A stretch of DNA of 64,000 nt from Pocillopora damicornis (GCF_003704095.1 NW_020846280.1:248001-312000); one strand, 5' to 3'; numbered from the stretch's first letter, positions 8,702 to 51,995 are shown. Made by a program: numbers and translations. The notes: a model not told the origin generated them from the letters alone.

Positions 8702-11700
8702 ATGATCAAACCGCTTCTTCGCCGCCACAGTATTTCCACTGCCGCTCAGTTCTTTGAGCCGGCTCCTTCACCCACCAGAGCTGTGATTCACCAGGTGTCT
8801 AAAGATTTTACGAGTAGTATATTTTACATTTTCATCAAATGTCTATTGTATCATTTATTTTTGGAACAAAAACAATGTACTGATCAATAACATTTACTGT
8901 CTCTCTCACAGGAACCTACAACAAAGAAGATTTGCCCTGTTTCCAGTATGACTGTGTCAGCTGATGCATCACCTGATGTAGCCAAGAAAGGAATCTTAGT
9001 ACAGGTTTGTTCACATGCCAAATGAAATTCAAAAAATAAATTTAATGTGTGATAGTGCTGTTATTTTATTTTTCTGTCAGTAAAGGCATGTATTTATATG
9101 TATGTCACTGGTTCTAATCTAAACCAAACATGTTAAACCTTTTTGGCTCAATTGCCATCAATCAACTATAAATTTTAAAATTTTGGGAATTATAATTTGC
9201 TTCTTTGAACAAAGGTAACTGTTTTCTCTGGAGAGACCTAACTGATGCTTTTAACTTCAAGAAATCTAATGTACTGGTTCAGCAAAAGTAGCATAAACTT
9301 ATGCTTCTTTCTTTGGGAATTGAATTACAATGTTTTCCGATATCAGTGTCTGCTTTTAGAATCGTACACTTTCATGAAGGTGTCAGGTCTTTGTCTCTCA
9401 TTAGTTAATTAACAGGGTTATCAGCCTCTCCTGTTGTTAAATGCTTCAAGATTTTAATACCCAGAGGTTTTTTTGCTTTTCAGCGATCAGTAAGTTTACG
9501 ATCCAGTCTAACAGTCAAAGATTCTGACTTTGCCAAAAGGTATAGGCTTCTCCCTACTCCAACAAAGCATCGGCCAAGCAAGGTATGGTCTTTGTCATTC
9601 AATTTATCTGCATGTTGTAACATGTCATGTGTAGTTTCGTATATCTCAATTATTCACCCTGAATCATCACCTTCTTTCATTCCTGGGCATTTGCTAAATT
9701 GTATGTTAACAGGGCCAAAAGGAAAATGTAGATTTGCAAATTTTCCATATTCCAAGGATAAAAGACAGAATTTAACTAGATTGGGCTCATAAAAGAGGAG
9801 TAAATAATTCTTTTATTTATAACAGTGTGCTTTAATTCCTAAGGGATTAAAAACATCTTGATAATTTCATTTAGAAAGCCGATGTCATGCAACAGTACTA
9901 GAGTATTTTTGGGACCCTGACTGTAAATTTAATGCTATCATTTAAGTATCATGTTTCCTTACAGAGATTTGAAATAACTCATTCTGCACTTGAAGCAGTG
10001 AAAATTTCTTCTACAATGGCTCATGCACACTACAATGCCTTAATTGTTACTTTCTCACAAGGTCATCATAATATGAATTGTCAATGAGAAATTCTTTGAC
10101 CTTTAAAGCCTACCAATTTGTTTTTTCGCGTTGAAAGCCCACACTTTGACATGAAAATTCAATTTACTCTCTCTCTGATCCAATGCAGATAATCGTGTTA
10201 ACTGCATTTATAAATGCTGTAGGTAGCTTTAGTTAGAAACAATGTTAACGGCCACATTGTTCAATGCATTATTTTCTGCATTTGACTGATTAGACATAAT
10301 GATTAAAAAGATTTAATGCCAAAATTATTAAGTTACTATTTTTGCCTGACTATTGCTTCTTTGAAATAACGCAATTTTTCAAGTTGCCTTTTGCCTTGTT
10401 CATCCTATTTCCTATTCTCATGGATGTTAATGAAAATGTTAAAAATTTTAAAAGAAGCAAGAGTATTTTTTCACTCCTTCTGTTTTATATAGGACACTCC
10501 AATTAGAATAACCACAAGCTAATTTTGCAAAGTAAACATAGCAGATAACAAGATTTAAAAGAATCCAACAAGCTCGCAGGAAATTTGATTTAGCGGGCTT
10601 TTTAAGAGAGCTTTTGGTGTTAAACTTTGAACTTCAGGGAAACAAACTTAAGGATTTGTAAGTGGCAGTGGTGAACTCTAAGCCAAACTGTCCATTCATG
10701 CTGTGATGAACACTCGCCATAATAAAAGTGAAGAGGTGTACATTGACAAATAGAGTACTTATCATTTAGTTGAATATGAACAAATAGCTATTTACATTTT
10801 CAGTGAGAAAAACCTAAAGGAATATTTTTTATAATCAGCCAAACCGAACATTGAAAGAAATTTTGTTTTCTTAAACTAAGTTTTTTTAAGGTGTGCTTTA
10901 TTTGATAAATTTCTCAGTTTTAGAGTTTAGAGGTTTAAGATTTCTTGATTTGTTGTTGTCTTCCTATATTAGTCTTGGAGTGAGACAGTTTCTAGCAATG
11001 GAATTAGTACTACTCTTTCACAGACTGAAATAAAACGGCAAGAGGTGAGTTTAGCAAGTTTCAGACAAGCAGTTAGCCAATTTCTGTCTCCTGAAATTTT
11101 CATGTAAGCTGTACAAAATGTATTTACCCTTATAAACAAAGTTTTCCATGGCTCAGTGGTAGAGAATTGTGCAGCAAAATTGGAAGCCCTGGGGTCCAAT
11201 TCTTGCTGTGTACTCAAATATTTTCTTTCTCTGTTGCTCATGACAAAATGAGTGACAAAATTCTTTTTTCAAAAGAGCTTGCTAAAAATTTCCCTTCTTT
11301 CTGATCAAGCACTGGGATGCAAATTTTTAAGGCCAAACTGAAAAACTGAAAACATAAGGTTTTTGTGTTTTCATGACACCATCTAAGAGACGCTTTTTAT
11401 ACTCATGTTAGACCAGAATTTATTTTATTAAAGTCATCATGCTCTCAAAAATGGTATTACCAAACTGACATCAAAATGTTGAGCCGCAAGAAAAGAGTTT
11501 TTCTTTACTTGATTGTTTGAAAATTTTCATGGTCCAGATTTCATTTTGAGGAAGTCATTATCCTGGTTTGAAATTTCAAGAAGTGAATTTTTTCTGATGA
11601 CAGGCTATTTATGAGGTTTGCACAGGAGAAGAAAATGTTGTGGCTGATTTGAAAATGATAAAGGAGGTAAGAGATATCTCAAGATATTATTAGAGATTTA

Positions 11701-14700
11701 AATTGTGTATCTTGGAATTCTTATCTTGTTTGATGTGAAGTGGCTGTCTTTCCTCAGTTTAAACTCTGCTGCTCAACTAGTCTGTGAACCCTTACACTCC
11801 CCGATCTTAGTGGTAATTCTCCTTACTACCTGCTTTCAATTCTTATGAAGTTAATTTGAAGAATTTGATATAGGATCAACTAGGTATCCCCTTGATTGAC
11901 ATTTGTCTTTATTCTCATCTCTTGTTTGCTTGATATTGTATTGATACTGTAGGAGGAAATTCTGTCTTGGTCACTCATGGGGTGAACAGGCTCTTATAAG
12001 CACTGTAGTACGATCAGCAAAGCTTTGAGAGAAGAACTGATTAGGGGCCACACTGCTTATTAAAGCCTATTCATGTGCTATTGTTGAATCTCCTTGAGTG
12101 ACTTCCCTTTGAAAGTGACTATCACTTGAAAGAAGAAGATTTTTATATTTTTTTGAAGAGTTGCTAACTGTTGTTGCCATTTGTTATCCACCATATTTCA
12201 TGTATATGTATATTAAGCTCCTGTTTTGCATTACTATCCATTTTATTTTTTACTTAATCATTGTGAGCAGGTTATAATCCTAAATATTGTGTCAAACTAG
12301 ATTTTATCTTTGTTGCCATGACATTAAATGACAATCAGTTTTTTAAGGTGCTTAGGGAAACTAATATTGGCTCATGACGGCATTAATTAACTACCCTGTC
12401 TTATTTCTCAGAGTGCTTTTTTTTTTAATTGGCCATGAATAGTCCCTGTATAGTTCTGGGTGATAACAGAGACTTTCTAGAATGTGCAGCCTTAAAAAAA
12501 AAAATCAGTGAGAACAAACAGTCCTCTAACTTGGATTGCTTGGCCCAGAGTATAGCCTCCTAGAGGTCAGCCTCTCCACAATTTATACGATACATGACCT
12601 AGTGTCTGTAAAATGAAAAGAAGGTGGCCATCTTTTTACAAAATAAATTTTAGGAATCTGTTACACTACAACACTATATAAAAGGTTGTCCGCATTTTTC
12701 TGTGGGCACATCTTCGTGTTGTCAGCACTTTGATATTTTTCTGTCTGTGGGTTTTTTAAATTCTCTCCTGGCTTTGCCCAAAAGTTGAAATTGCCAAAGT
12801 GAAGTACCCAGTCTTTCTCTCACAAGGAATCTATTGATGTATTTATAGTTTACTTCATTTGTATGACAATTTTCGTTTTTTACCTGCTAACTGTAAGTTT
12901 ATTTTTTTCTTACAGGTTTATTATGCACCAATGTACAAACTAAAGCTAATGAATGAATATGAATTTATGAAGATCTTTGGCTGTTTAGAAGTATTATTAG
13001 CTCTCCATCAAGGTATGACCCCCCCAAACCCTTTACACCCTAATATTGGCATACACATTCACCCGACTGTTCTCTACACGTTTCCTAAGGTGCTCTTTAG
13101 GAGAATTTGTTTAACATTCAAGAACTTCTTGAGTTGGTGATCATTTCCTTTATTTAGGGGTGATATTGTAAGGAGAAATTAGTTGCTGAACACTCTTAGG
13201 AGTTAAGGGGTTCAAGAGGAGTGTTTTACTTGGGTGCTTTTATGATCCTTGCTATCAATTCTCCCTACAGTTTGCCATACGCATCCTATACTGTTAGCTC
13301 TGAGAATTTGGTTTTGACTCAAACAAAACCCGTGAGGTTGAATTTTGTTTTTTCCCATCATTTTTCTGCTCGATAATGTGTTTCAAGAAGAAAGTATTTG
13401 ATTGAAAAGGCTACCTAAAATACTGCTGAAAATTAATAGTTTGAGACGTAAACTTTGTCGTATTTTCTTGCTTTAGATCTTCACGCGAAGTTAAAAAATG
13501 CAAGATCAAGCGATGGTACAACGGACAGTATAGGAGACATCATGTTAAACTGGGTATGTGTGTGTGGAATTGTTTTATGATTGTGTTTATCGCATGTTTC
13601 TACTATTAGACCTGTTTAGAACACAGAACAACGCTGTTTTCAATCTGGTGAAAAACATTCACCAAATTTCATTTGGAGGAATTCTGTGGTGATGTGTTTT
13701 TGCTCAAGGCAGTCGCTCATATAAATATTTACTACGCTCCAGAAAACGCGCTTCTTTTTCCACACCAATCAGATTTAAGCCTAAGACCAATTGCGTCTTG
13801 GTCACCCGCGTTTTCCCGCGCTTCTGGTGGTTTTGTATCGTTTCATTTTGAGATCTTATTGGCTCCTCGTGACATTTTCTTCTGTTCTGATTGGCTGTTG
13901 TGATTGCTTTGCTTTTGCTTTTACGACACTTTTACAACCGCAAAGATCTTTAAATACAAACAGACCTTTTAGAACCCACAATTCTTAACGAAGTATTGGC
14001 AATGAGTTTCCTTTTTACTTTAGTTTCCAGGTTTAAGATGTTACGCACGATATTGTGCAAACCAATTCGAAGCAAAAACCATTCTCGACGAAAAACTTCG
14101 TCAAGGTGGAAGCGTCGCCGATTTTTTGCAGGTAAATCGCGATTCCTGGCTGTAGACAGGACGTTTCTTAGAAATGAACCTACTGACGTAGGTTGTAATA
14201 ACTTTATGATCCTTGCTATCAATTCTCTATATAACTAATACGTTCCCTCTAACTCTGTGGTAAAGCAATGGACCACAAAATCTTAAGGCCTGGGGATAGA
14301 TTCCTTGTGGGGTGAGTGGGATGGGGCTGGCTTTTTTCGTCGTTTTACTCTCTTTTTATAACATCTGCGTAGAAGGGCAAGGAATTCCTTCCGTCAACCA
14401 CACCTTGCAAGTACCGTCTCCAAGGTCAACTGTGCTATTACTTTAAGTTCAGCGAAAAACCTCCCGGAAAGCGTGGTTTGCGTAGCTTTTCCCGATAAAC
14501 GCCCTTAATCAACGGAACTGGTGCAACGGAAAAAGAACGAGTGCTGACTATTAGATTCGCGGTTTGCGCGTCATTACAGTTTTTTCACCTACCCGTGTTT
14601 TGTTTCTGCTCTTATCTTTGGTTATGGTTTTCCTTTTTTCTCGGAGCGAAGTTATGACATTATGAGCGGAAGATGGGTGGGCGATTTAACACACTAACTC

Positions 14701-17700
14701 TCCTGATCCGAATAATTCTCCTCACCAACTTGAATATATTTGCTGGTTATCGATAGAACACAATTCTCATCACGTTTTTTTGAACGATTTATAACTATTG
14801 TGGGGAAGAAGTCAAGAAGTCGACAGTCAATGAACACGGTTCAAAATTGTGCAATTTAAAGGATTTTCCTATTGACTCCCGGAGATTTACAAAAATGTTG
14901 CTAATTTGTTTCATTAGCTTAACTTCGTCAATTTAAGATTTTCCTTTGGAATATTTTGGGGGTCTTTCAAATTTCGAATTTTGTTTAATTTTATCGTTGT
15001 ATTCTTTTTCTCAGAGTGCTTTTGAAGAAGTTTTCTGTATTTTTTTCTTCTATTGCGTGTGTTTTGTTTTTCCCTTTATTTCTGCAAAAGTGATTGGTTT
15101 CTGCGAACACCTTACTTAAAGTGGTCAATTCTCTTGTTTTCGTATCTGTGTTCTGCGTTGTACTGGCTCGTGAGCTTTCTGGACTCTTCCAAAGGGCAGG
15201 TCACTATTTCTGTGCAAACATTTCCGGATAACAAAAACCGCCGTGTAAAATGGTGCTACAAAACCAGAAATAGAACGAAACTAAAAATATACCAAAGAAA
15301 AACATCGACCAATCCTTTCTTCTCTCAGGGTATTGTGTTCGATCATAGAAGTGCAGACCTAAAGAAAAAAAAGAAACAGAAAAACAAACTTGTGGCACTC
15401 TCAACCACTCCATATCTCGCGGTCCACTCTGAAATGAGTTTCACAAATGTTTGTGCTGTTTTTCTTGCAGTCCATTGTAATCTTTTCATTCTTTACCTTC
15501 CTCCTTCTTTTTTTGTGCTTCCTTTTCAATTTGGTGTTTCTCCATTTAAAACTAATATTTTGGGGTGTCCTTCCCAGTTTAAATATTTTTTCTGGCCGCA
15601 ACAAACGACTACTATACTTAAACGCTCGCTCGTAAATGATCCAGCGGAAATGACACTTACGAATACACACGCGTGTGTGTTTTATATTTTGTAACCACAA
15701 ATCCACTCATTTTCTTTTAATTCTTACAGAGATGCCGTGACTCGCCATTCAGTCGGAAATTAGATCTTTGGAGCTTTTTAGGTAGGTTACATCGCATCGC
15801 ATCACATAAGCTTCTTTTCCAATTACTTGGAAGGAATTTCCGGTGTTTAAGTACCTTTCATTTCAGCTCAAGTCTTGTTAATATAACCATTGTTTTAACA
15901 GAAGTAGCATTGTGTTCTCAGGGTGTTTTAAGTTTTTTTTGTAGCTTAAGTTTGTTAAGTCAGAGATGAAAGAAAGCGCCACTGAGGTGTTTCCCGATAA
16001 GTAACTTATTCCAGTACAAAGAGCTGACAACAACCTTTAAGAAGGCCAACTTTCCATTTCTTCATTCCGCTTGCAACAGTTTTGACGCAGACAGACCGTT
16101 AAAAATCTTATTAATTAGGAAAAGCTGTCTATAGATACTGATGAATTATCCGAGGTGGCATCCACATAAATGTTTAGAAATCAGAATGGTAAATTGTTTC
16201 GTTGTGTGGATTGAGAATTTGACTGAATCTTAACCAAGCGCGCGTATTTGACTGACCGCACACAAAGCGTGTTTTTGTTATTTTTGTTGGCGCCGAATAC
16301 GATTTCCTCTTCGCTTATCTCTTGGTTTAGCAAGGGAAGGGTTAATATCAGTTTCTCACGCAATAAGGACAAGGAAAAAAGTAAAACGACAAAAAGAATA
16401 CTCAAGAATAAACTTCTAATGCGGTCTCATAAACGTGGATGCAATCAGTAGCCAAGAAGTTTTTAAAAAAGGACAAATAAGTGAACACTGTGTGGTGTTG
16501 AATAAACTTTCTTAAGGCAACGAGTTAAAGTGGTTTTTTAAACTTCTTTTATTCTTTACGAAATTAAGTAGATAGAAAGGTGAACAGGACTGTCATTGTG
16601 AAAAAAAAAGAAAAAAAATGCAGGAATTTTAAGTCCAGAAAAGTTACCCCTAAGGTCATTTTTTATACTTTCATCGCCTTTACTTTGTTCTCCAAAAAAT
16701 GTTGATGTGTGATAACTGCATCACGTGTGCGTGGTTTTGAAACGTTGAGAATATCTCGAAATCTTAAACGCTCTCGTGCAGTCAATTGAAAACCAATTAT
16801 CGAGTAATCTGGGCGATAAACGCGCTTAAGATTGCATCATTAACTAGTTGTTTATCTTCCTCGGCAGATTCGCCCAGGAGTCGCCTGGTAAAATACCCGC
16901 TGATGCTGCGCAGCATACAGAAATACGTGAGTAACACTTTCATTAAGTGGGCGGAATTTCTTTCCAGTAGCTTTCCCTTGGGATTTGAACCATCAGGGGA
17001 CCTCCCTTCCTCCCTCCCTGTGGTTTGGGGCTCATGCTTTATTGCTGTCTTCATTAGTTCCTAATGTTATCCCTCGGCTGTAACTTCCGGCCTGTCAGCA
17101 TAACACGTCCCCGCTTTGGTAGCAGACACGTAGAGTAGGAGATAATTTTGTAGCGAAAATTTGTGACTCAGAAAGATGTCTGAGATCCGAACGGTGGCAC
17201 CGGATTTGGGTTGGCGAGAGTGAAGCCACTTAAGATATTTTTATTTCGGTTAAATTGTGAATAAGAGCTAAGTATTTTTATTGTAATTTACTTCTTATAT
17301 ACTGTTGCTCATATTTCAGACGCCGAAGGAGCACTCCGACTGGCGAAAACTAGAACGAGCTGTGAGTATTGTTTAGATTGGGGAATTTACCCGGGGAGGG
17401 GAGGGTAAAATTCCTCAACCAAGGTTTAGAAGCGTCCAGTTTGTTCGTGAGTATGTTCGTGCAGTAAAACTAGGATTGGAACGAATCTGTAGAAACCTTG
17501 ATTTTAGGAAATATGTGATATAAGAAGATCAATGAAGGAGCTTAAGTTAAGCTTTTGTCTGTTGCAGATTTGCCGTTTACAAGACATTATAGAAGAAGTG
17601 GACAGAAAAACAGGCGAAGCAAAGGTAGTTTGGTTCACGGCCGTTTTATTATTTTTTTTCATCGTCCTTTCAGTCCGTGTACGTAAGTTTTTTCTGCCAG

Positions 17701-19600
17701 TCTGTCTTCAGTTTTTTAACCAGGATGTCTTTGTGTTGCAGTGTCAAGATGTACTTAGTAGAATAGTTTTCTTGGATGACAGACAGGTAATGTTCAGTTG
17801 CGTTTTTCGGAAACTCTAATATCTGGGAAATCTTTAATTATTAAAAGGCGCGGGAAATATGGTCAGCGGAAAAAGCGGGAAATCATGTAACTAGCATTAA
17901 GGACGAAAGCTGGTACCTAGCGGTAAGCGCGAGAAAGCACGTAATCAGCACCAGACGGAAAGTATAATATTAGAAGCGCGCAAGCGCATGTTGTAAGAAA
18001 AGGTTGCTAAGAGTGTTTAAGTCTGTAACCAGTGCCAAGCGCGGGAAACATGCAAGAATTGCAGAACGCGGAAAGGCATACATCCAGTGCTAGGTACCCG
18101 AAACATTCGGGAAAACATATGTTGGTGCGCTACACTGATTTTTGAACTAAGGAGCGCTTTTCACGGTCTTATCCCCTTAAGAGGTACGGGTTGTCGAAAT
18201 AATTCCTTGGCCATTATCTAGTATGTATAATTTTTTTCTGGTAAATTATTGTTGTTATTGTTTGCTTTAGATGTGCCCTCATGTATTCAAGTCCAAGAAG
18301 CTTTTATGTAACGGCACACTACGAAATAAACATGGAACGGTAAGAAGAACAGGTGTTTTGATTAAAACCCCTGGTCGACGCAACGTCAGAGTTTCTCTAG
18401 AAACTTATTCCTTTATTCATTCGTCTCTACTTCTTTCTATTTAGAAGCTACATGTGTTTTTGTCGGAGACAGTCTTTCTGCTTACTCGTCCGGCTACAAG
18501 ACAGGACCGGGCCAGCTATCAAGTATTCACACAGGTTAGTTTGTTGTTGTGGGTCTGAGATTCCCTCTTATTGGAAATGGAAATTTATTTTATGAAGTTC
18601 CTACCACATAAGGTTTCGCAGCTGTAAAATGGGACTTCGTAAAAACTGTAGTTTACAAAGGTCTCACAGAAATTTTGCCTGAAAGCCTCCAGTTCGTGGT
18701 TCGCGTTTGAACTTATAGGGCCGGTTATTTACCAACTAAGGTTCTACGCAATCAGTGAACCTCAGGCTTTCTCTATAAGAGGATTGATATAATTAAATAA
18801 ATTTCCTTCCACTGTTAACTTTGGGCCCTCTTGACGCTGTTTACAAAAACAAATGTTCCGATTAAAGGTTTAGCTAGATTGGGGATTTTTTAACAGGGAT
18901 TGCTTAGGAAGGGGTGTTGTTACACAATGGCTAAACTTTGTTTAAATAAGAAGACTGTAGTATTTGGGCCAATTCTGAGCGTGAGAGAGAACAATTCATT
19001 CCAGTACACCTCAGTTATTGACTTTTTCCCAATGCTTTTGTCAGCCAATCCCAGTCGAGAATCTGTTGGTCGAAGATCTCTCAGATGGTGACGTCAGAAT
19101 GGGTGGTTCCTTCAAGACTGCGATCTCAAGACTTGGTACAGGTAAGAGATAGCGTTTTCTTTGTTTTGCAATGAAAGTACAAATTCTGGCGAGAAAATGC
19201 GATAGAAGCCACTCTAAATATGTTCACTAACCTTCAAGTGATTAAGACTTCAGCGTTTGTCGCAGCTAAAATTCTTCCGTGACTGTCTTGTTATTTAGAT
19301 GGAAAGAGGCTCTGTTTTCGTATCTCTAAATAAATAATTTTGCAATCAACTGTCTATGAAAGCCATCTTCCATGGGCCATAAAAATCTGCTTAGTGCCCT
19401 TTTCACAAACTTTTCCCGCACACCATTAATGGTTGATTTTTTTTTCAACAGCCAAACACGTTTTCCGAGTATCAAGTACAGATGCAGAAAATGGTCAATC
19501 ACACACGTTACAAGCTCCCACAGAACAGGAGAAAAAACAATGGTTGAACGCTATTCGAAGCGTGATACCCTGTCCGGAGAACTATAAGACTTATCTCTGA
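8702..19600 (+). CDS. NET1: NET1/ARHGEF3-family Rho guanine nucleotide exchange factor (DH-PH), 17 coding exons, about 453 aa
   Basis: Phase-consistent GT-AG exons: 8702-8794, 8912-9004, 9484-9582, 10973-11044, 11604-11666, 12916-13012, 13477-13553, 14024-14131, 15730-15781, 16868-16926, 17320-17361, 17568-17624, 17742-17786, 18271-18339, 18445-18534, 19045-19141, 19452-19600 (sum 1362 nt). The translation contains EIKRQEAIYEV, YCANQ, DFLQRCRDSPFSRKLDLWSFLDSPRSRLVKYPL, KLHVFL, PIPVENLLVEDLSDGDVRMGGS and SHTLQA..KKQWLNAIR, which are hallmark motifs of vertebrate NET1/ARHGEF3. Probably co-orthologous to both vertebrate paralogues. Confidence 0.93.
11148..11270 (+). mobile_element. Degenerate tRNA-derived SINE-like element
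   Basis: TGGCTCAGTGGTAGAG (A box) ... GGTCCAATTC (B-box-like). Related remnants occur at about 14255-14310 (+) and 50660-50812 (-). Confidence 0.45.
11787..11990. mobile_element. Degenerate MITE copy
   Basis: AACCCTTACACTCCC..TAATTCTCCTTACT..GAAATTCTGTCTTGGTCACTCATGGG; same family as 23918 and 28840. Confidence 0.6.
13027..13215. mobile_element. MITE copy
   Basis: AACCCTTTACACCCTAA...CTCTTAGGAGTTAAGGGGTT; related to 22385-22581 (inverted). Confidence 0.65.
13745..13940. repeat. Dispersed repeat (CCAATCAGA...GGTCACCCGCGTTTTCCCGCGC...GATTGG family)
   Basis: A related inverted copy lies at about 59860-60075 and partial copies at about 20230-20350 and 43610-43745. A GCGCGGGAAA-type tandem array lies at 17845-18130. 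Confidence 0.5.
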
Positions 19601-22384: not shown

Positions 22385-22581
22385 TAAATCCTTTGATATC
22401 TGAGGGTGAGTAGCATCTAATGTCTCTTCACAATATCTCACCCCTAAATCACACACAACGGTCACAAGAATGAAGGAAATTATCTTTATTGTTAAGCAAA
22501 TTCTTTTAGTCAGCACCTTAGGAAATGTATAGAGAACATTATGGAGGATATACATACTGATGTTTGGGTGTAAGGGGTTAA
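22385..22581. mobile_element. MITE copy
   Basis: Ends GGGTGTAAGGGGTTAA; the reverse complement matches 13027-13215. Confidence 0.65.
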
Positions 22582-22987
22582 AAGAAATGGGCAGGGAAAA
22601 TATTATGTATTGTAAATCCTCCAGTGGCTTCCTATGACTGGTTATGTCAATTTTCATACATGCCTGTCTCACAACAAATTACTCTTAATTAATTCCATTC
22701 CTTCTCATCTTAGGATTACTTCTGTATATTTTCTATTTCCTAGCATTTTATTTATGATTCCAGGATATTTTCAGGGCTGTTTCTTCATTGCAACCTTGTT
22801 CGAGATCACTTTCACATTTAGTTGCTTAAGTATTGAATGCCCTTAAAATTTAATGTCTTTAATGGCATATGTCTACCCAGAGACCTGATTAAAACTATTT
22901 TTTTGGCAAATAATCTCCCTCTTTTTTGTTTCCCACCCAATAAATTTTAATTCAACGAAACAACTCCAATGCTTTTTAACAAAGTTT

Positions 22988-23590: not shown

Positions 23591-23917
23591 TTGAGGCTTC
23601 TAGGGAGGGGTAGGACAGGGATCTTGTCTTTGGGTGGGCATGACAGCTGTTGCCTGATGAGACAACGGCAGCTTTGAAGAAGTCGGGGGGGATTTTTTTG
23701 GGAACAAAATTAAAATAGAGTTCATAAACATATGGAAAAATATCACAGTAGGATGCACCCATTCATTTGGTCCTGTTGTATCACAAAATTATGTGTTTTT
23801 GTGTGATTCAACACAGCTCTTTTGAATTTATTTCTTAAACTAAAGGAACATTTCCTTTAATCTGTATTGATTCTTTTAATTACAGTTCACTTAGTTTATA
23901 AATACAAGTATCAACTA

Positions 23918-24130: not shown

Positions 24131-24150
24131 AATTAGTTTTAAATCCTTAC

Positions 24151-41100: not shown

Positions 41101-44100
41101 GGCCTGTTACAAGTAAGTTCTAATCCGTATCTTGCCTTGTCAACAAAGAAACGACCACTAACTGACATGGAGTATAGTGACCTTGAAGACATAAGTCCAG
41201 GTGAGCTCAGTTCTGATTTTGAGAGCTGGCCAACCACTCCAGACACACCTGAAACGGCCACCCCAGCCATGGACTTTACTCACCCGAGTCTGGGATTCTG
41301 GGCTGCACCACTGAAATCAAATGACGTTTCCAAACCAGCTGGAGCTGTCGTTAGCGATGAACATCAGCAGGTGTCCGATTTACAGATGTTGTCGCCAACT
41401 TTATCTCCACCGGCATACCTTGAAGAGCACCCTCTTGTAGGGGTGGAACAAAGCCAAGTACCGTATGCTTTTGGAGAGGAAAAGATTCAGGATGTCGTTC
41501 AAGAACCTTGTATATCACGATCATCTTGGCCAGGTTAGTGTCATAGTTATATTAATGTTCAGACTTATAATTAGTTTTACAAGAGTGAAAACTCATGGTT
41601 AATAGTATTAGAGGGAAGGTACCGTAAATTGAAGGTAGCTACAGAGGAGGGTAGGAATCACCTTAGCAACCTAGAGGTCATCGAGCGATAGCGCTTCTTT
41701 CTGTCATCTCAACACCGACGAACCGGTTTATGGAATAACTGCTCACCTCGAAATGTGGTAGGGAGGGAGAGGGAGAGAAAGAGAGAGAGAGAGAGAGGTA
41801 AACAAAGGAAGCAAAGAACCCAAGGAAATTGAATAACCGCATCTGGAAGCCCCCTCGTCACAGAAGGAAAAGCGTCGCATTGACTTACATGACATGTACA
41901 TGAAGCCTCATAGAATAATATTATAGCGTGCCACTTCTGGAGAAAGAGCTCATAAGTCGTGATATTGGAAGATCCACGACTTGAGACAGAGGAAGCAAAA
42001 TTAAGCTTCGTTGCGTTTGCTTTTTAGTTGAGGGTTTCTTCTGCCAAACGACGACCTCTGAGGAACGTGACTTGGGATTGGGAAGTCTGGGTCCGACAGA
42101 GCTGGTGGTGCCCAGAGTTCACAAAGAATCTTTATCGTTGGATGACAGCACTGGTCATTATATCTCACAGTCTGCACACGAAAGTGATGAGGACATTGCA
42201 AGGTTTGTTGACCAATGGTTTTATTTTGTTAGATGAACCATTCTCTTTTTACTTAGGGAATAGGACTGATAATGACTGGGCGTCGTTTGGATTTTTCAAA
42301 GGGAAACGGAAGGGGTTCACATTCACAAATTTCCGTGCACCATTTACCAGTTATAGGTTAAGATGTGTGAATGGATTCCACGTTCAGAATTTACCTGACG
42401 ATTAACTCGAAGTTCCTGGAACGCCTACGACATCTTTTACAGAGTAGCTCTCAATGTATAACTTAAGAAACAAAATAGTGTCCATGCTGGCCTGTCAGCC
42501 TTCTACTTTCAGAAATGTTGTTCTCCTTGTTTTATTTCAAGATATGGTCAAGAGCTTCCTCAGTCTGAAGTGTTTGAATATGGCCATGGACTCCCTGATC
42601 ATCAACACCAACATTACAAGTCACACAGGGATAGCGCCCAAAAACCACCCAGAGGAACACAGAAGGTAGTTGAATCAAGTTACTCGGCCACATTTGCTTT
42701 ATAGTCTCGAAAAGATGCAGTTTTGCAACAAAACGATAAGTAATCAGCATTACTGGATACAATTAAGTTTGGCCTGTTTTTTCTCGATAAAAATAACCTT
42801 TCAGAATTATTTTTTACTGTCCATACGGTGTAATTTTTTTTTTACCTGAATGATTATTTTCTGATAGGAAGGAAAGCATCGCACAACAATTCGCGAGAAA
42901 AGATATCCGTGGAAGAGCCGTGAAGAGGTCAAACACAGCCAGGGAACGTCACACAGCCAGGGAACTTCAGTTGGGGGAGAAGGCAGGTGTTGTATTCACT
43001 TGGTTAGGGATACATCTGAATCAGCTACTTTCAGCAATGCTCGTTCACAATCTTAACCAAACACTCAACCTTTACACTCCCAAGATCAAAAGATCGGTTC
43101 TCTTTACAGTTTCCCTTATTTCCCTTCAGTTTTCGCTCGGAGAATTTGGCGTTAAATCAAACAGCATACCTAAGCTAATAAGTTCCCTTTTTGCAATCAC
43201 CTCTCTACTGGACAATATGTTGTTATTGTAGGGAGACGTTCCTTATTAGTTGCTCTTGGGAGTGAAAGGGTTAACTTTTGTGTCACCTCTGTGTCACGAG
43301 TCATCGGGGGTTGATGATCTGTCGAAGGACTTAGTACGTAGGCACAGACGGAGAGAGCATGGGCTCGAGGATCTACTGTTTACCCTTCTTCTCCTGTGAT
43401 TGGTGGTTCAGTTCATCCATACTGGCTGGCTAGCTAGGTTCCTGAGTTTTGACAATTGCGTGCTCGGCCTTGGAAAGGAATCAGCGCGCCACTGAAAGGA
43501 CAAATATTCTCCTGAGAGAGATTTTCAAAGAGATTGTGAACAGTTGAGAGTAGCTGTCGATGATGTGTTTTTATCCTTGAATTTATCTTTTTTTCCGAAC
43601 AATAATGATATTAATTAGGATTGGTTTCACTTCTGCATCTGACTGGTTGAAAAGCTAGGGTGTGGTCTCGTTACTGATAACAAAGCGCATTGAAGCAGAA
43701 CCAAAGCAGTTCTAGATTACTTTCCATAGTCAATCGAAAAGTGCCATAGCACCGTGGACAAATTTTAATAAACTCCAGCAAGAGGTGTTATTCCCATGAT
43801 TTTCGTTTGAGGGCATAGAAGTGAAATCAGAAAGGCATGGTTTCCTTATCATCTGAGGGAAATTAGTGAATGAAATTACAAAATATACATATATATATAT
43901 ATATATCTATATTTTTGAATTGTTTGGATTCTTTCTGGTGGTTTAGATTCCAAGTTAGTAAGTCAAAGCGCCACTGGAAAAAATACTGGTTGTGATGAAG
44001 ACAGCCCTGACAAGAGACCTAAGGTGGTTCAAGATGCAGAAACTGCTAATCACGGTAAATCTGGCGGGATTGAAAAGCCAGAAAAATGGGACATATATGT

Positions 44101-45582
44101 TTTTGCGTGGATGAATAAAGTGCAGCTTGAAAACTGGGTACGAAGGCAGAACCACGGGGCTAAACTGGCCACCATTGGAACGGACCAAACTTGCACTGTT
44201 GAAATTACCCCAGAATCTAAACGCAGATCTTCAGAACGTTTATATCGTCGAGCCAAGAAGCGATTGAGGCGATTATGTCAAAGCTCAAGGCCGTGTACAG
44301 AGGACGCAGATACTCCAGAACCAGCATTTGATGACGTTAACGCGGAGACGCAGTGTGAAAGTTTTACTTCTTTTCATAAAGAAGCAAGTTCCAGTTCTGT
44401 TTCTGTTTCAAAGGAAGATGGGAATGTTGAGAGATGTTCTGTACAAAGCGCGCATGTTAATCACTCGGTATCATCTTGCACTCCGGTTGAAAATTTTGCA
44501 CAAAAGCACATTGATGTTAATGTTGAATGCGATTATTCTGTTCATCCCAAGACGGATGATCTGTTGTGTGATAAAGAAGTTTCAATTATTTTCGAAAAAG
44601 GTTTGGTTACAGAGGTGGAAGGAGTTACCGGAAACAACGATGATCCAAATTATCCAGAAACCAGCTGTTCACATGTTCACCTGGGTAAAGATTCGTCTGA
44701 AGAAGAGGAAGAACACGACGATGTATCGTTGGGGGATCAGGGAAACGAGTGTGGGAGAGATGGCGTACAAAGAGGGCCACTAGCTGGCGCAGAGAGTGAT
44801 AGCATTCATAAAGAGGATGCAGTAATTAAGAGTTTTCCAACCAAAGTGTTCGATTCTAATGAGGATAAAGAGCATCAACCGCTCGACATAGATATGCATG
44901 ATATTGCAGATGATGTAGTGTTACACCATGCTGTTTCTGAGGGGAATCGTGAAGCAAAAGACAGACAGGCAAACCTGTGTGTAACTGCTGATATAAAGAA
45001 TGTGAACGAGTTAAAGTCGATCGGAGATTTTTCTTTGGATTTGAATTCACAACATGAAAAAGACACAAGCGATACGCCGCAGAACGTCAAGGAGGTTACT
45101 GAAGATGTCGAGGTGAATCAAAGTACAACCGACGAAGCTGTGGTTGTGAGGAGTGGATCTGTAATCTTCGAAGACCAAAAACCAAGTTTAGCAGGACAGA
45201 GTATCCCAGATGTTGAAAATAACTCTCGTGAGGAAGGTAGTCTTGGTCATGAAACTCCAAAGTGTCCTGATGAAGGCGAAACAGGAGAAGAAAAGATGCT
45301 CGCAGAGCCTGACTTAGGTCCTGATGGATGTGGAGGAAGAGGAGAAGGAGAAGGAGAAGGAGAAAAACGGGCAGGTATTAAGATTTCCGATCCTAAAACT
45401 AGGAAGGAGAATCACATGAATGAAGCTCCTTTTGAAACCTTGGCAGCAGAAGAGAAGACAGATGGCTCAGGTCACGAGAGGACAGCCTCCACTGTTGCCA
45501 ATGCATTGCCAATTGAGGCTTCAATCGGTATAAGTTCAGATCATTTCAACAAAGCCCACAAAACCCCTTCAACGACTGCTGG

Positions 45583-45620
<38 letters not shown>

Positions 45621-48600
45621 GTGCTGGTGTGTTGACGTCTTGTGATCCTGGTGTGCTAAAACTAGTTCCAGGTACAGTGCCCTCAGCTCTGGAACCTCTT
45701 CCCCAAACCCACATTCCACACTTTCTTCTCCCTCCTCTTCCTCTTCGTCCTTCGCTCCCGAGGAATGTTGCATGTAGCTCTGTTAATAGTTGTCCTCCTG
45801 GTTCAGAACTTCTGTCTCCGACAGAGGCAAGTGGTAATTCAACAATATTTCCATCGGATTCAGTGGCGCAAGAAGTCGCCAATAAAGATGAAGATGATGA
45901 AGATAGGCGACCACCCAAGAGTATAATGGATCATTCGGTGGTTTCGGCTTTGGTGCAGTTTTACACCGAAAGCAATAACGTAAACGGCAACAGAAACTGT
46001 GATCTCAAAGAGAAGGAAGATAATGGTAAAACTAACTCTGGTGTCTGCATTTCGACTCGTATGGAATCAGTGCAAAAGAGCGACAGAAAACATGAAGAAA
46101 CAAGTGATATGGAAATAGACTCTGATAACGAAAGATCCGAAAGCTCTGACGGATATTCAATTCAAATCGATAACACAAACGGAAGCAGAAACAGTGATTT
46201 GAAAGAGAAGAAAGATGATGCTGAAACAAACTCTTGTGTCTACATTTCGACTCGTATGGAATCAGTGCAAAAGAGCGACAGAAAACATGAAGAAACAAGT
46301 GATATGGAAATAGACTCTGACCAGGAAAGAAATGCCACCATTATGGTTATTGAGAGATCTGAAAGCTCTAACGGATATTCAATTCAAGATAAGCCGGCCA
46401 AGTTGGATTCTGCTGACACTGTAAACCAACAAAGCTTAGCAGCTGGTGTTCAATTGCATGCTGAAGACGATAAGGTATCGGTGGGGAAATCTTTAGATGT
46501 ATCAGCAGCGAAGAATCCTGATGTTGATGCAAACCTACTTAAGGATCAGGAACTCTTGAACAATGACGCCCTCAAGGAGATTCCAGGTTGTTCTGGTAAC
46601 GAACGACAAGAAACGCTTTCATGCGTCTCTCGAAATGATCTAGGAGTAGGAAAAAATGATATGGAAGTGGATGTGGAGTCATTGCTGAAGTGTTCATCAG
46701 TCACTTCCAACAAATCAAGTGGAGATAGTCCTGACGTTATCGCCAATAACACTATGGTGATGGGAGATAATTTGGTGGAAAATCCTAAAGGTACATCTGG
46801 GAGATCGCAAGCAGAAAATCTTGATTTTGCGAAGAATGAAGTGCGTGTACAGGAAGGCATAATTGGTATTAAAGGAAAAACGAGGAAGAATGTTACAGAT
46901 GAAAATTATCAGGAGAATCCCATTGTCTCTGGTTACAAACCACGAGCAGAAGAACCAGCAAACTTGGAGGAAGACTTATCTGAAGAGCAACTATTGAGCC
47001 CCATTGATCCGCTCTTCATGGCGAGTGCTGAGCAGACCATTTTCAGCTCAATAGGTGGCTTAAGAAACCTGTTAGGACAATCGTCAACGTTTGATCGCAT
47101 CGCAGAGGAAACCATTGCCTCAACTGTGTCTTCGTTGGAGGATATTCTTCGTCAAGCAAATTGCAGCTACTTGGAGCTGAGCAGCTGCCCCTCTGACAGC
47201 GGTGTGTCTGTGGGGGAGGAAGCTTCGGGTCCTTCTAGAGTATTCAACTTTAACAATATTACGCATTTAGCGACCCCTCCACAGGAAAAGGATTGCAGAA
47301 CGGGGTCGTTGGATGGGCAGTCTCCAAGTGGAGTAGGGCAGCCAGAGTGGCTGTCTACAAATGAAAAGAGTGATGCACGTTGTTACCTCGGTAGAGGTAT
47401 GTTTGTTTGTTCAAACTGACTAGTGAAATGCATGTGCNNNNNNNNNNNNNNNNNNNNNNNNNNNNNNNNNNNNNNNNNNNNNNNNNNNNNNNNNNNNNNN
47501 NNNNNNNNNNNNNNNNNNNNNNNNNNNNNNNNNNNNNNNNNNNNNNNNNNNNNNNNNNNNNNNNNNNNNNNNNNNNNNNNNNNNNNNNNNNTTTTTAGAC
47601 ATATCAAATCTATGGGTGCAGAAATGGCGCAATTTTGAGAGCGGTGCCCTCCCAACACTGAGAACCAGAATCGACTCCTCAACGCCAGTCAACTTTCCGT
47701 TCCTCTGTGAAAATCATGTTATAGTGTGTTGTTGTACTTTCTTTTAGTATCAGGGAAGCCTTCTATTCAGAAGAGAAGTCAAAAGCCAGGTGTTAACAGG
47801 AAGTTCCAGTTCTTTGTGTATTCACCAGACGTTGACAGGGAGTGTGAAGCGTTGAAGGTATGTTGTATGTTGTATGTTGTGCCATTTCCTTAGAAAGGAG
47901 TCGCAGTTAAAGAAAGATCTTTCGGGGTGTCACGTTTGTGAAACAAAGATTAGTCCCCAACAATGAAGCGAACGGCAGACCTTCGCTTTTAGCGGTTTGA
48001 AGCTTTAACGCTCTAGAAATCAATGTCCCTTTACTGAGACAGTTTGTGCAGGTTTTAACCAACGCACATATCAAACCGCGGTATCCTCGTTACTTTGCAT
48101 GATATCGCCATTCACTTTATGATAACAATAGTACACTGTTGCTCAATTGTTTAAGGTTGCAATACTGTATGTTTGTTCTTTTGTAAGAACTACATGTTGA
48201 GAGCAGGTGGAACACTTGTGGATGTCAGGAACTCCAAATATTTGGAGGAAAATACACGAGAGCTGAAAGTGTTCATCAGAAAAAAACACTTGCCATCTGT
48301 TCACAGGTAAATAAAGGAACTGAAGATAAGTATGGTTTTGTCTCACCTAGTCTACTATTTTTCTTCTGCTTTTTGGGGGCACGGTGGCTCCTCTCCAAGA
48401 TAGAGGGTGCGACTCACTTAGCCGGAGTGCTGAAAGAGACGCTGCTTCTCTCTTTTATTTTGTCTCCTTTGGGGAAGAAATAGTTGGTGTTTGGCACGGC
48501 TAAATCTGTTTTCGGAGCGTGTTATTCCCAGAATTTTTTACCGAGTGAATGTCTCTGTGACAAGTGGTTAATGGGCTATGTTGTCATCCTCTTCCTGTGT

Positions 48601-51600
48601 TCTGTACTCACTGTAAAATTGCCGATATTCCTTAAGATTTCTCAATATTTACCTCTTTGTCACCAGGTTGGCCAACTTGTACCGATTGAAGATGTCACCA
48701 CTTGTCAAGTTCTCCCTGTTTAACACTTTGACAGGTATGCGAAACATTCATAATAACAACTGCGAATTGATCTTCACCGTTAGACTGCTATTAACTTCAC
48801 TGCAAAAAAGGGACGTCACAAAAATTTAGTTGATTAGTATAGTTGAGTGGAGTTGACGTCGTCTTTCTTTGTAGACGTGACAGAAGGAAGCCGTTTTTAC
48901 GAGAACATCTTTGTTTCGGGTGGTGCCTTGCTGGCCGATGACAACTTTCTGAAGACAATTCAACTTGGTGAGTCTATGGACAGTCTGCATCTGCATGCGA
49001 GAGGGGGGAAAGGAAGGTTGAGGGGGGTGAAAGAGTGAAAGGTGAGACGGTTTTGGGGGGGAGTGAGAGGGGGAAGAGGAGGGAGGGGTGAGCGGAGTGA
49101 AAGAGTGAAAGGTAAGATGGGGGGGTAGGGGATTGGGTGGGAGCGACAGGGTGAGGGGTTACATATAGATGCGGCACCTCTGAGGGATACTTATGTCCTC
49201 TGGCCCAGTCTTAAATGTTCACTTGTACCACAGTACAGTCCTGGTTTGAATTTCTTCAGCCCTGTGTTGATCGTGTTTCAGCAGCCGGAAGTTTCTCTCG
49301 CTCGCTGCCTGACTATTAAGCCGTATCGTTCTTGCTTTACTTTCGTCTCGTAGATCACCTTGATGCTCTGTTACGCTACCTAAAGGAACAAAGCCTAGTT
49401 CATCAGAAGTTCGTCTGGGTCTTGAACATCAGCCGAAATGGCTACAAGAAACTTTCTCTGAACAGGTGAGTCAGTTTTGGCTTCGTCAATTTTTTATCGT
49501 TATTCAGAAAACCTGTCATCGCGTTGGCTCCGCTCAATCCCTGCGTTTTTTTGTTTTTTGTTTTGGTTTAATTTGCTACAGGCCACTGACGAGAAGAGAC
49601 TCCAGAGTTCTGGTAAGTTCGCTCTTGGTTCAATTTAGTTCGCGTAGTCGGCGCTTTTGCATGCATTTTGAAGTGTTATGCTCCGCTTATCTTATAAGCC
49701 AATAAGCTCTCGCCAAACGGACAGATTAACCTCTGTTCTGGTTTTTTGTTTTGTTCGTTAGTTTTTTTTTTTATGTGTTGCTTGGCGTGCAGCTTCATTA
49801 TCAAAATAGCAAAAGGGTGCTAATGAGTTAATCGGTAACGTTCATCGTAGCTCGCCAAAAAACTTTACTCTCTCAATTTTGTAAAGACATGCGCGAGAGA
49901 TAATGCGGCGAGTGAGAGGTAATTCGCGTATAATTTCAAGGGCGTGGGATTTATCTTGATGTGTGCACTTGAATACACATCGATTCGAGACCTTACTTGG
50001 AATAGTTACATGACTGAAGAAGATATGTATAATTTGAAGATTTTATATTCTCCCCAACCCCCTGTCCCTTCCACTGTTAATTGAATTCAACGTGTTTCCC
50101 CTAGAATCTTCTACGCGATTACAAGAACGAAGGTTTTGTTACAGTTCTTCAAAAGGTGAGAGGATTTGCGGTTATCGTCGAAAGCTGCATATTCATTGGC
50201 AACATTCCCAGAAATTATGGAAAATTGTTGGAAACATTTGACGAGTTTCCCTTGAAACGTCCGATACCGATAGTATTTGAACAAGGATATTAGTAAACGG
50301 AAAGATCTTGTGAAATGCGACTTTGGCAAGTTTACCTTGAGAATTGTCGAAAAGAAATTTCGTTTTTTTGTTTTTGTTTTACGTAGCAGTCAACATGATT
50401 CGCCAAATAAAGCTCGCTTTTGTTCCTAACTACTACAGTGGGAATTTTGTTAAATTTGAATGCTGAACGTATCAATTTTTCGAACCAATTTGATTTCAAA
50501 ATGCTTTTGTTTTGTTCTTCTCGACCAGGGTTACGTAACAGAAGGCATTCCGTCTTCCCAGCGCTATTTACAGACCTCGCTCAAGCTACAAATTGAACTT
50601 GTGTCTGTCTACAGACACGTGATTCTGTTGTCAGGTGCGTCAGCAGAAATCTTTTGCCTATGATATTTTAAAGAAGGGTGTTATTCGTTTTTACGAGCGT
50701 GGTTCAAATAAAAAGTCATTGTCCTCCTTATCGAAATCGAAACCGAAATACCATCAGAAAATCCACACCATCCAGATTTTGCGCTCTGATGTTTAACCAC
50801 TGAGCAACAGCTATGGTAAGCCAGGCCAGTAGTACCGGTTTTGTACCTCTATCACGAATTTGAAAGATTCGAACCACCCAGACTCAAGCCGAACTGCAGC
50901 ACAGAACAATGAGAAGTGATTTGTATTTTCGTTGGATTTAAAGTTCGTGTTTATTTTTCCTCTAAGTATGCTCCAATGTTACGAGTACAAAAGAGGGAAT
51001 GTCCCTTCCTCAGCATGTAAAATAATGGCTTATCCTTGCATGTTTCGTTAAAATCAGTGTTTCTCTTGATCACAGATATGGACAAGAACAGAATGGAAGT
51101 ACCGTGGTTCTTTGAGCGAGGGGTGAGCTTATCAGCCAGTGCAGATTAAATTTTTCCTATTCTAAGGGGCCATGAGAATCTATTTTAGCTGTGCTCTTCC
51201 TTATTCGAAAGATATAATTTTTTCGTTTATTTCCTCTTTTAGATTGGGGTTATGAATGTTAAAGAGTTTTTGACGTCATTTGCGGGGTAAGGAGTTTGAA
51301 CAGACGCATACATACGCTCGCACGTGTGCATGCAATTACGCACGCATGTGCGTATGCTTCTACACGTGCACGTTTTCACATACGCATATACGCTCGTATA
51401 CTCATACGTTTATGCATGTAAAAGTAAATAACAGGATCTCGAAATTACTCCAAATATTTGGAAGCCGCTTTTTTAATACCAATCTTTTATTTTCTTTATT
51501 ATAGGGAAAGGGAAGCAACAAACCTGATCCTAAAACAGCCGAATCCTGAAAGTATGTGTAAGGAAACTACGGCAGTGGCATATTGTTCCACTCCCGAAGG

Positions 51601-51995
51601 TGCGTTAGCTTGTTGCAATACGCGCGTGCCAGCTGTTTGTCTCATTCTTTGCTTGTTGCAGTCACAACTACGATTTCGTTATTATCCAATGGGAATTGCA
51701 CACGTGTTTTCTGCTTCATTTCCTCTTTATAGATGAAACGTCTCTCCAAACTCCGCTGGGAACTCCAATGTCAGACTCCTCAACTGATTTTCCATATATG
51801 GAGACACAGGCTCGTGAACCACCGCGCTCGACTGGCACCCCCCGAAAGCGAGCCGTACGCTCGCGGAGCTGGGATGCAGGTTCCATGACCCACACTCGGC
51901 TCCAGATTCTCTCATGCGTGAGAACTGTGCGTGACAGTATTCGTAGTCAGATTAGTAATAGTACTCCTTCAAGTCCTGTAGGTCGGTCCATGTGA
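26126..51995 (+). CDS. TASOR: TASOR/FAM208-family protein (HUSH complex scaffold homologue): pseudo-PARP (DUF3715), SPOC, very large low-complexity region, DomII/PIN; about 35 exons, about 4,100 aa
   Basis: Exons: 26126-26339, 26523-26668, 26821-26916, 28143-28215, 28692-28783, 29233-29379, 30034-30168, 30247-30316, 30670-30802, 31199-31308, 31743-31849, 32315-32390, 32718-32789, 33816-38345, 38487-38789, ~39249-39440 (uncertain), 39527-40006, 40709-40788, 41149-41533, 42028-42202, 42542-42665, 42868-42982, 43947-47396, 47748-47857, 48188-48306, 48667-48734, 48875-48967, 49354-49465, 49582-49612, 50105-50155, 50529-50634, 51076-51122, 51243-51286, 51505-51599, 51733-51995. The motifs FVIPRK, ICENGLEVG..LGDPSMGVYLGRHAD, FKVIKGK, LEPTPNFDCHVS, QYYFYE..RPRHCLPYAV, VWTGKI, LHALLF, FVSGG and RHVILLS match human TASOR (recalled). 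The middle exons are less certain than the termini. Confidence 0.88.
26523..30168 (+). other. Exons encoding the TASOR pseudo-PARP (DUF3715) domain
   Basis: Spliced translation ...SYRDP...LVFNDQLSRE|YQDKKQSMRNEWRNSKELEDKHAFFYTVDREE|ARKICENGLEVGSTSLSCLGDPSM|GVYLGRHAD...FKVIK|GKVK...EPTPNFDCHVS...SQ|YYFYEF...RPRHCLPYAVI. Confidence 0.88.
28840..29050. mobile_element. TTAA-flanked MITE in a TASOR intron
   Basis: TTAATCCTTAAACTCCCA...TGGGAGTTAAAGGGTTAA, near-perfect TIRs. Confidence 0.78.
30670..32789 (+). other. Exons encoding the TASOR SPOC domain
   Basis: VVWTGKITNKDRLLADAQL...IKLPFE...FLHCELVP...LVKFFQEKNWAGIVK...IFLIP...LHALLFV follows the SPOC pattern (W-x-G start; AG-x-V, FLIP, LH-x-L). 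Confidence 0.8.
32889..33105. mobile_element. MITE copy
   Basis: AACCCTCTAACTCCC...ACATGTTTATCACTTCTGGAAGTTAAA; same subfamily as 1531-1742. Confidence 0.65.
33380..33530 (+). mobile_element. tRNA-derived SINE-like element
   Basis: Pol III A-box-like TAGTCCAGTGGT and B-box-like GGTTCTCGTCC at tRNA spacing. It is a GC/CpG-rich island in an AT-rich intron and lacks a canonical acceptor stem. Confidence 0.55.
37760..38080. other. Assembly gap (321 N) inside a Glu-rich tandem repeat of TASOR exon 14
   Basis: Flanked on both sides by GAAGGAGAT and E/G/V-rich codons; the gap length keeps the frame. Other gaps lie at 1838-1937 and 47438-47591. Confidence 0.95.
43066..43274. mobile_element. MITE copy
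   Basis: AACCTTTACACTCCCAAG...CTTGGGAGTGAAAGGGTTAA TIRs. Confidence 0.7.
45575..45630 (+). repeat. (GCT)n trinucleotide run encoding a poly-Ala/Gly tract
   Basis: GCTGGTGCTGCTGCT...GGTGCTGGTGCTGGT encodes TAGAAAAAAAAAAGAGAG. Confidence 0.9.
45970..46390 (+). repeat. Coding tandem duplication with a 195-bp (65-aa) period in a TASOR giant exon
   Basis: ISTRMESVQKSDRKHEETSDMEIDSD occurs twice, 195 nt apart (TCGACTCGT at 46052 and 46247). Confidence 0.93.
47748..51286 (+). other. Exons encoding the TASOR C-terminal DomII and PIN-like domains
   Basis: KFQFFVY..CEALK|NYMLRAGG..LKVFIR..HRLANLYRLKMSPLVKF..YENIFVSGGALLADD..LLRYLKE..WVL..LLRDYKNEGFV..LKLQ..RHVILLSD..GIGVMNVKEFL is colinear with the human TASOR C-terminus (recalled). 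Confidence 0.8.

Follow-up and report, generated by a model that had tools for sequence, protein, structure and literature searches.

A 64,000-nucleotide stretch of the genome of the coral Pocillopora damicornis (GCF_003704095.1, NW_020846280.1:248001-312000; this whole stretch is hereafter called the window, and positions are counted from its first letter) carries, between positions 8,702 and 51,995, three neighboring genes of unrelated families: a NET1/ARHGEF3-type RhoGEF on the plus strand, a convergent ASB13-type ankyrin-SOCS-box gene on the minus strand, and, head-to-head with the latter, TASOR on the plus strand. We consider it highly probable that this arrangement descends from an ancestral eumetazoan neighborhood with a divergent ASB13/TASOR core. 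Within Pocillopora the ASB13 member of that core is a transcribed pseudogene, which has lost most of its first coding exon and part of the second and has nevertheless kept its position between its two neighbors. An initial reading of the window made from the DNA alone (the sequence-only reading) had proposed the convergent GEF/ASB and head-to-head ASB/TASOR layout, and had likened it to that of human chromosome 10p15; the layout is borne out by the analyses described here.

Conservation of the Neighborhood

The gene neighborhood of the window was compared with those of Nematostella, Stylophora, two unannotated anthozoan assemblies, two amphioxus (Branchiostoma floridae and B. belcheri), the crow, the herring, and the sea slug Plakobranchus; in amphioxus and Plakobranchus, neighbor genes were looked for within 10 kb of ASB13. 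The sequence P0001, 97% identical to the window and possibly a second copy of the same genome, was left out. In Nematostella (OW051994.1) the layout of the window is mirrored, with a TASOR of 2508 amino acids (aa) on the minus strand, an ASB13 of 304 aa on the plus strand 0.7 kb away, and a RhoGEF+SOS1_NGEF_PH gene of 557 aa on the minus strand. Stylophora has a 3964-aa gene (-), an ASB13-like gene (+), and a RhoGEF of 478 aa (-), with exon-level homology to the window; indeed, the window can be aligned to Stylophora pistillata at 66-86% nucleotide identity, introns included. The full triplet, in the same order and orientations, is present in three anthozoan genera (Pocillopora, Stylophora, and Nematostella). 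The two unannotated anthozoan contigs each contain two ankyrin exons and a SOCS exon that are divergent from the TASOR exons.

Outside the Cnidaria, the TASOR of B. floridae (3847 aa, -) lies 1.2 kb from an ASB13-like gene (+) that is followed by two alpha-amylase genes, and the arrangement in B. belcheri is the same. The amylase genes (a tandem pair in B. floridae) fill the amphioxus site where the cnidarians have the RhoGEF (L008, 28378-35690; L014, 24770-32230). In the crow, a TASOR-family gene of 2510 aa (-) is separated by 8 kb from ASB13 (+). ASB13 and TASOR are divergent (5'-5') in every lineage that has kept the pair, and since this orientation is shared by anthozoans, cephalochordates, and vertebrates, the ASB13-TASOR core predates the cnidarian-bilaterian split.

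The proposal of the sequence-only reading that the entire three-gene block is older than this split holds, and its firmest part concerns the ASB13/TASOR pair. The RhoGEF was not found beside the pair in any of the non-vertebrate bilaterians examined (two amphioxus and Plakobranchus). That the GEF belonged to the ancestral linkage is nonetheless well supported by its adjacency in three anthozoan genera and its linkage in both of the paralogous human regions. Among non-vertebrates other than Pocillopora, where absence of the adjacency had been thought a possible sign of coincidence, it was found as the triplet in Nematostella and Stylophora and as the pair in two anthozoans and two amphioxus.

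The human counterparts were taken from published positions. A gene list for a 10p15 deletion, ordered by position, reads "... NET1 ... ASB13 FAM208B ..." (PMC6393686), and coding single-nucleotide polymorphisms place FAM208A at chr3:56,667,213 and ARHGEF3 at chr3:56,766,435 (GRCh37), ~99 kb apart (PMC12524468). In these two respects, the order of NET1, ASB13, and FAM208B and the nearness of FAM208A to ARHGEF3, the human facts cited by the sequence-only reading have been confirmed. The published list gives the order alone, and for the strands in the NET1/ASB13/TASOR2 region we assume those stated by that reading.

Identity of the Three Genes

Domain searches were run exon by exon. The DH-PH part of the RhoGEF occupies 11622-19597 (+), as delimited by a tblastx chain and by matches in the PDB and Pfam. 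Its exons lie approximately at 11622-11687, 12883-13014, 14024-14134, 15727-15786, and 16864-16995 in the first half, and at 17562-17630, 17727-17789, 18271-18342, 18445-18540, 19045-19146, and 19433-19597 in the second. Several results bear out the plus-strand RhoGEF that had been claimed from the DNA. In tblastx the exons form a colinear chain, over the whole of 11622-19597, with the Nematostella RhoGEF that adjoins ASB13. The last exon (19430-19597) encodes the C-terminal PH domain (Pfam PH, 3.7e-8; SOS1_NGEF_PH, 9e-7), and the DH domain leads directly into it; the neighbors in Nematostella and Stylophora carry RhoGEF+SOS1_NGEF_PH. When searched one by one against the whole PDB (E up to 10), the exons 12883-13014, 14024-14134, 16864-16995, 18445-18540, and 19045-19146 matched only NET1 (3eo2, 4xh9) and ARHGEF3 (2z0q) and none of the other, numerous DH-PH structures of that database; on NET1 4xh9 they fall colinearly, at 52-84, 112-145, 159-183, 254-283, and 284-312. 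Since the matches are confined to these two proteins, the gene can be classed as a NET1/ARHGEF3-type GEF, apparently closer to NET1/ARHGEF3 than to other RhoGEFs by these exon-wise searches. A six-frame scan of the genome with PF00621 missed the short exons of the window. The candidate N-terminal exons suggested earlier at 8699-9789 (+) were not confirmed: they are open frames that match no Pfam family and no relative, the relatives' loci having ended short of there.

The ASB13 locus extends over 23554-25650 (-). The stretch 24142-24549 (-) matches Pfam Ank (2.7e-16) and the stretch 23482-23709 (-) matches SOCS_box (7.3e-10), on the same strand and in the expected order; the SOCS-box exon proper (23554-23697, -) has an intact frame and is 77% identical to residues 257-304 of the Stylophora ASB13-like protein. 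The orthologous ankyrin exon of a related coral led to annotated full-length relatives, namely the Stylophora "ASB13-like" and Nematostella "ASB13" proteins and those of Acropora and Oculina. When a profile was built from eight cnidarian sequences, its best non-cnidarian matches were essentially all vertebrate ASB13 (255-283 bits, from every vertebrate class), and it also matched a Branchiostoma "ASB13-like" protein (283 bits) and a mollusc "ASB13"; human ASB9 scored 217 bits and ASB11 171 bits. By these best-match scores, obtained without a tree, the closest vertebrate relative appears to be ASB13. The ASB13-like gene anticipated on the minus strand is borne out by its two domain exons and by these scores, which do not place it in another ASB subfamily.

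It could be objected that the coral gene is some other ankyrin-SOCS gene, not an ASB13 orthologue, and that its resemblance to the human arrangement is superficial. Ankyrin repeats do score highly against many unrelated proteins; the PDB matches of the ankyrin exon, for example, are dominated by multi-repeat ankyrins and DARPins. The assignment draws on best-match scores, and the ASB5/9/11/13 clade as a whole, with ASB13 as its nearest and its positional member, may be co-orthologous to the cnidarian gene. Nonetheless, the top non-cnidarian matches that bear a SOCS box are essentially all ASB13, including those of amphioxus and a mollusc, ASB9 and ASB11 fall 40-100 bits lower on the same profile, and the position of the gene independently indicates ASB13. 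We regard the objection as very improbable.

Transcript evidence was drawn from the RNA contigs of three studies (runs X15, X17, and X19), with one separately filed DNA run (X2) for comparison. The 5' part of TASOR (25981-33000, +) is defined by RNA splice joints, Pfam DUF3715, and exon conservation. Exon 1 spans ~25981-26338 (ATG at 26126), and the next exons are 26522-26666, 26819-26914, 28141-28214, and 28691 onward; the intervening GT..AG introns (26338/26522, 26666/26819, 26914/28141, and 28214/28691) are present in RNA contigs of the three studies. DUF3715 is matched by the exons 28655-28822, 29203-29418, and 29962-30174 (profile positions 48-86, 80-129, and 128-150), and a scan of the genome with this profile points to the same site. 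These three exons and the RNA introns, which begin with exon 1, substantiate the head-to-head TASOR that had been read from the plus strand. Further conserved exons lie near 30633-30803, 31691-31882, and 32561-32827 (+). Compared with two other anthozoan assemblies the N-terminal exons show 65-85% identity, and with Nematostella 28-82%; they are conserved in Stylophora too. The other early candidate exons gave no Pfam match.

Decay of ASB13 in Pocillopora

In Stylophora the coding exons of ASB13 encode residues 1-99, 99-256, and 252-305. Nucleotide comparison with that species reveals in the window a single fusion exon at 24150-24533 (-), which begins at the acceptor of the 5' untranslated region (5'UTR; 24533), continues through the native ATG (24517-24515) to a deletion junction at ~24504/24503, and ends with the rest of ankyrin exon 2. 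What is left of the 5' end, the native 5'UTR with 14 bases of coding sequence (ATG GAC AAA AGT GA, 24517-24504), thus abuts the middle of exon 2. Relative to Stylophora ~1.36 kb is absent: exon 1 beyond these 14 coding bases, the whole of intron 1, and ~38 codons from the start of exon 2. This removes codons 6 to ~136 and joins codon 5 out of frame to ~codon 137, so that the open reading frame (ORF) from the native ATG amounts to 27 aa, where an intact gene should have one of ~280-305 aa; the remaining 136-codon ankyrin frame lacks a start codon of its own. The possibility that exon 1 was merely too diverged to be recognized was ruled out, since the nucleotide alignment shows a clean deletion.

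A DNA contig of the separately filed run crosses 23954-24824, deletion junction included, without any difference from the window. The same junction occurs in RNA contigs of more divergent Pocillopora lineages and in P0055, which represents 113 member sequences. These concordant sources indicate that the deletion is real and common to the lineages concerned. Two smaller lesions, a 4-bp deletion (TAAG behind 24190, i.e. 24190/24191) and a 3-bp deletion (behind 24369), are shared by the window with RNA run X15 and DNA run X2 and are absent from RNA runs X17 and X19; they are later, lineage-specific events. The 4-bp deletion, which is polymorphic among runs, also shifts the frame of the SOCS-box exon.

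The locus is transcribed all the same. RNA contigs define a non-coding first exon with a minimum extent of 25572-25650 (-), followed by an intron at 24534-25571. This joint (24532/25571, with GT..AG ends on the minus strand) is seen in RNA contigs from each of the three studies and is missing from the DNA run. Its acceptor at 24533, located 15 bases ahead of the ATG, is the 5'UTR acceptor of the ancestral gene. No splice from the ankyrin to the SOCS exon was seen in the RNA contigs of the three studies. The annotated gene model at this site, pdam_00007493 (152 aa; P0059), maps at 100% identity to 24142-24531 and 25072-25134 (-). Its first exon (25072-25134) is supported by no RNA contig, and past the 4-bp frameshift the model reads on into the intron. 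The model is a remnant of the pseudogene and probably an artefact of annotation.

Two further observations concern this region. An RNA contig of run X17 skips 320 bases within 23355-23676, with four other letters in between and with ends (AT..TT) that are not splice sites; this is probably a structural variant, at the SOCS-box exon, of another Pocillopora lineage. Short interspersed repeats lie in the introns of ASB13 and TASOR (23895-24133, 24691-24889, and 27676-28073), and contig depth rises over them a hundred- to a thousand-fold in all runs; a unit of ~130 bases at 24000-24133 recurs across the genome in 40 or more copies of 78-84% identity.

The Region between ASB13 and TASOR

TASOR RNA contigs start at 25981-26015, and with the outer end of the ASB13 contigs this puts the two transcript starts at most ~330 bp apart. 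The intervening segment, 25651-25980, is a putative bidirectional promoter: both genes are transcribed in the three RNA studies, and no contig of the three RNA runs covers 25686-25884, a segment that is covered by the DNA run. Shared cis-regulation of ASB13 and TASOR, at which the sequence-only reading had hinted, is a possibility suggested by the geometry of the locus. That reading had also called for a search for conserved non-coding sequence in 19600-26126. In a distant coral (L004), in which the giant TASOR exon is only 51% identical to that of the window, the segment 25665-26102 is conserved at 67% over 455 bp; no non-coding conservation was detected across 19600-26130 with Nematostella, amphioxus, or a bird.

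The Remainder of TASOR and Its Surroundings

Beyond its 5' part, TASOR contains two giant exons. The first (33863-38419, +) has an ORF of 1299 aa before an assembly gap at 37760-38080, and for this 1299-aa part other assemblies yielded 22 orthologous products, each a single ORF. The gap, whose letters like those of other gaps were not filled in, sits in a Glu-rich stretch. Its flanks, 100 residues upstream and 113 downstream, both match the C-terminal 80-160 residues of uninterrupted ORFs in related corals, which indicates that it lies inside one exon. The second giant exon (44024-47419, +) is an open frame of 1131 aa, with comparable long ORFs in the relatives L001 and L002, and a second gap (47438-47591) starts 19 bases past the stop that closes it. 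The presumed C-terminal exons at 47592-51995 (+) are unconfirmed open frames that gave no Pfam match. In Nematostella and amphioxus the syntenic orthologues have DUF3715 together with TASOR_alpha-beta (SPOC/DomI) and the C-terminal PIN_TASOR; the latter two (PF23314 and PF24630, respectively) were found in the window neither by exon searches nor by a six-frame genome scan, which misses short exons.

A second DUF3715 gene exists elsewhere in the genome (G000:C580:62540-64979, +), with colinear exons and ~43% identity in the best of them. It was considered as a copy of a duplicated block and rejected, there being no ASB or NET1-type neighbor within ~10 kb; it is a distant paralogue that may be TEX15-like or a second TASOR-like gene. 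Following TASOR, and tail-to-tail with it, is a dystroglycan gene (54319-62551, -; Pfam DAG1, 1.9e-21; alpha-dystroglycan N-terminal domain 2, 2.5e-7), with long open frames between its two domain matches. Human DAG1, at 3p21, shares its chromosome arm with TASOR and ARHGEF3, and this neighbor may be a trace of a wider synteny.

Origin and Persistence of the Block

The history that we favor would begin in an ancestor older than the cnidarian-bilaterian split, in which a NET1/ARHGEF3-type RhoGEF would have been tail-to-tail with an ASB13-type gene, itself head-to-head with a single TASOR. Vertebrate genome duplication would subsequently have given rise to the NET1-ASB13-TASOR2 group of human 10p15 and to the ARHGEF3-TASOR group of 3p14. 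TASOR-like proteins are known across the Metazoa, and the TASOR/TASORB duplication has been described as an early vertebrate event (PMC10578480). In Pocillopora, ASB13 has died in place by the 1.36-kb deletion, with its promoter, first exon, and 5'UTR intron still in use and the order of the block unchanged.

Several observations nonetheless weigh against a conserved ancestral block. The ASB13 of Plakobranchus has neither TASOR nor a GEF within 10 kb and is head-to-head with a WD40 gene instead; in neither amphioxus is there a RhoGEF within 10 kb of ASB13; and the herring locus has no informative neighbor, the gene after ASB13 giving no NET1 exon match. In the human genome CALML5 and CALML3 intervene between NET1 and ASB13. 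The 8-kb spacing in the crow is too long for a simple shared promoter, and the orthology of ASB13 itself was judged from best matches rather than from an ASB gene tree with ASB5/9/11 outgroups. The simplest account of these exceptions would be an ancestral linkage of three genes followed, in some lineages, by insertions (amylases, calmodulin-like genes) or by loss. The other extreme, that the three genes were assembled independently in cnidarians and vertebrates, could appeal to the fact that all three are adjacent in no non-vertebrate bilaterian examined. This can scarcely be entertained, however: the ASB13/TASOR orientation is identical in cnidarians, cephalochordates, and vertebrates, a NET1-family GEF is linked to a TASOR-family gene in both paralogous human regions, and the chance that three specific genes of ~20,000 would meet twice is negligible.

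Granted an ancestral block, the question becomes why the pair has persisted. Transcription starts only a few hundred bases apart in invertebrates would imply a shared bidirectional promoter region, and so short a region would offer a very small target for rearrangement, by which the pair would be kept together. Judging from the geometry, we put the chances that this is the reason at about even. A somewhat less probable, though still serious, contender is neutral inertia, in which the block is equally ancestral and a few tight pairs simply survive by chance in slowly rearranging genomes, such as those of anthozoans, amphioxus, and vertebrates, without regulatory coupling. The break in the sea slug, the separation of the GEF in amphioxus, and the growth of the spacing in the bird are all in keeping with such inertia, as are the lack of detected intergenic conservation beyond the corals and the loss of ASB13 without visible change to the locus; moreover, 1-5% pairwise microsynteny is expected anyway between distant animals (PMC3514665). 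What inertia accounts for less readily is the retention of the 5'-5' orientation wherever the pair is retained, and the continued activity of the Pocillopora ASB13 promoter and first exon after coding capacity was lost, as would be expected if this DNA also serves TASOR. A stronger version of the shared promoter, in which ASB13 and TASOR have been functionally coupled through one promoter region since before the split (for example by a Cullin-5/ASB13 ligase that tunes the HUSH scaffold), would make Pocillopora a natural knockout, with the dead ASB13 persisting as a non-coding transcript on account of a promoter that belongs to TASOR's as well; this we consider unlikely.

The ancestral neighborhood has consequences beyond Pocillopora. 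Gene position lends sequence-independent weight to the view that the very long DUF3715 genes of corals and anemones are true TASOR orthologues, and the neighborhood supports the derivation of TASOR and TASOR2 by duplication of one ancestral locus that was already beside ASB13 and a NET1-type GEF. The loss in Pocillopora of the coding capacity of one partner, with its promoter still in use, also makes it simple to test what keeps pairs of this kind together.

Comparison with Known Systems

Nearly 600 ancient microsyntenic pairs are known, mostly 5'-5', and about half of them were already present in non-bilaterian ancestors (PMC3514665). We found no published description of the NET1-ASB13-TASOR block, in a literature check that did not extend to the pair list of that study. 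With hundreds of such pairs known, the neighborhood is real but fairly ordinary, and its twist is the transcribed pseudogene in the middle. The ASB13/TASOR pair is a clean addition to the catalogue of ancient 5'-5' pairs: like the CAMPs of Irimia et al. 2012 (PMC3514665), it consists of unrelated genes that have been linked for >600 million years in a conserved 5'-5' orientation, with short spacing in invertebrates and an occurrence in both non-bilaterians and chordates. It differs from them in that a third, convergent gene (the NET1-type GEF) has also been kept in cnidarians and human, and in that, in this Pocillopora genome, one of the two partners is a pseudogene.

Close parallels are the human regions 10p15.1 (NET1-ASB13-TASOR2, the last also called FAM208B) and 3p14.3 (TASOR, or FAM208A, with ARHGEF3), with which the coral shares both gene families and order. 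The divergence of ASB13 from a TASOR-family gene is shown in the bird; for human the published list gives order alone. The human distances, tens to hundreds of kb, are unlike those of the coral block; the coral has one TASOR where vertebrates, after duplication, have two, and its TASOR is far longer owing to the two giant exons. The bidirectional HSPE1/HSPD1 pair has the same head-to-head layout, with starts a few hundred bases apart and a deeply conserved orientation. Co-expression and a common promoter have been demonstrated there, whereas for ASB13 and TASOR, whose products have no known functional link, they are suggested by the arrangement. Finally, the decayed ASB13 resembles unitary pseudogenes in syntenic position, in that it still has its position, its promoter, its 5'UTR intron, and the greater part of two exons, and in that its protein can no longer be made from its own start codon. 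Unlike typical members of that class, its 136-codon ankyrin frame and SOCS-box exon are still free of stops, which suggests either that the loss was recent or that some residual use is possible.

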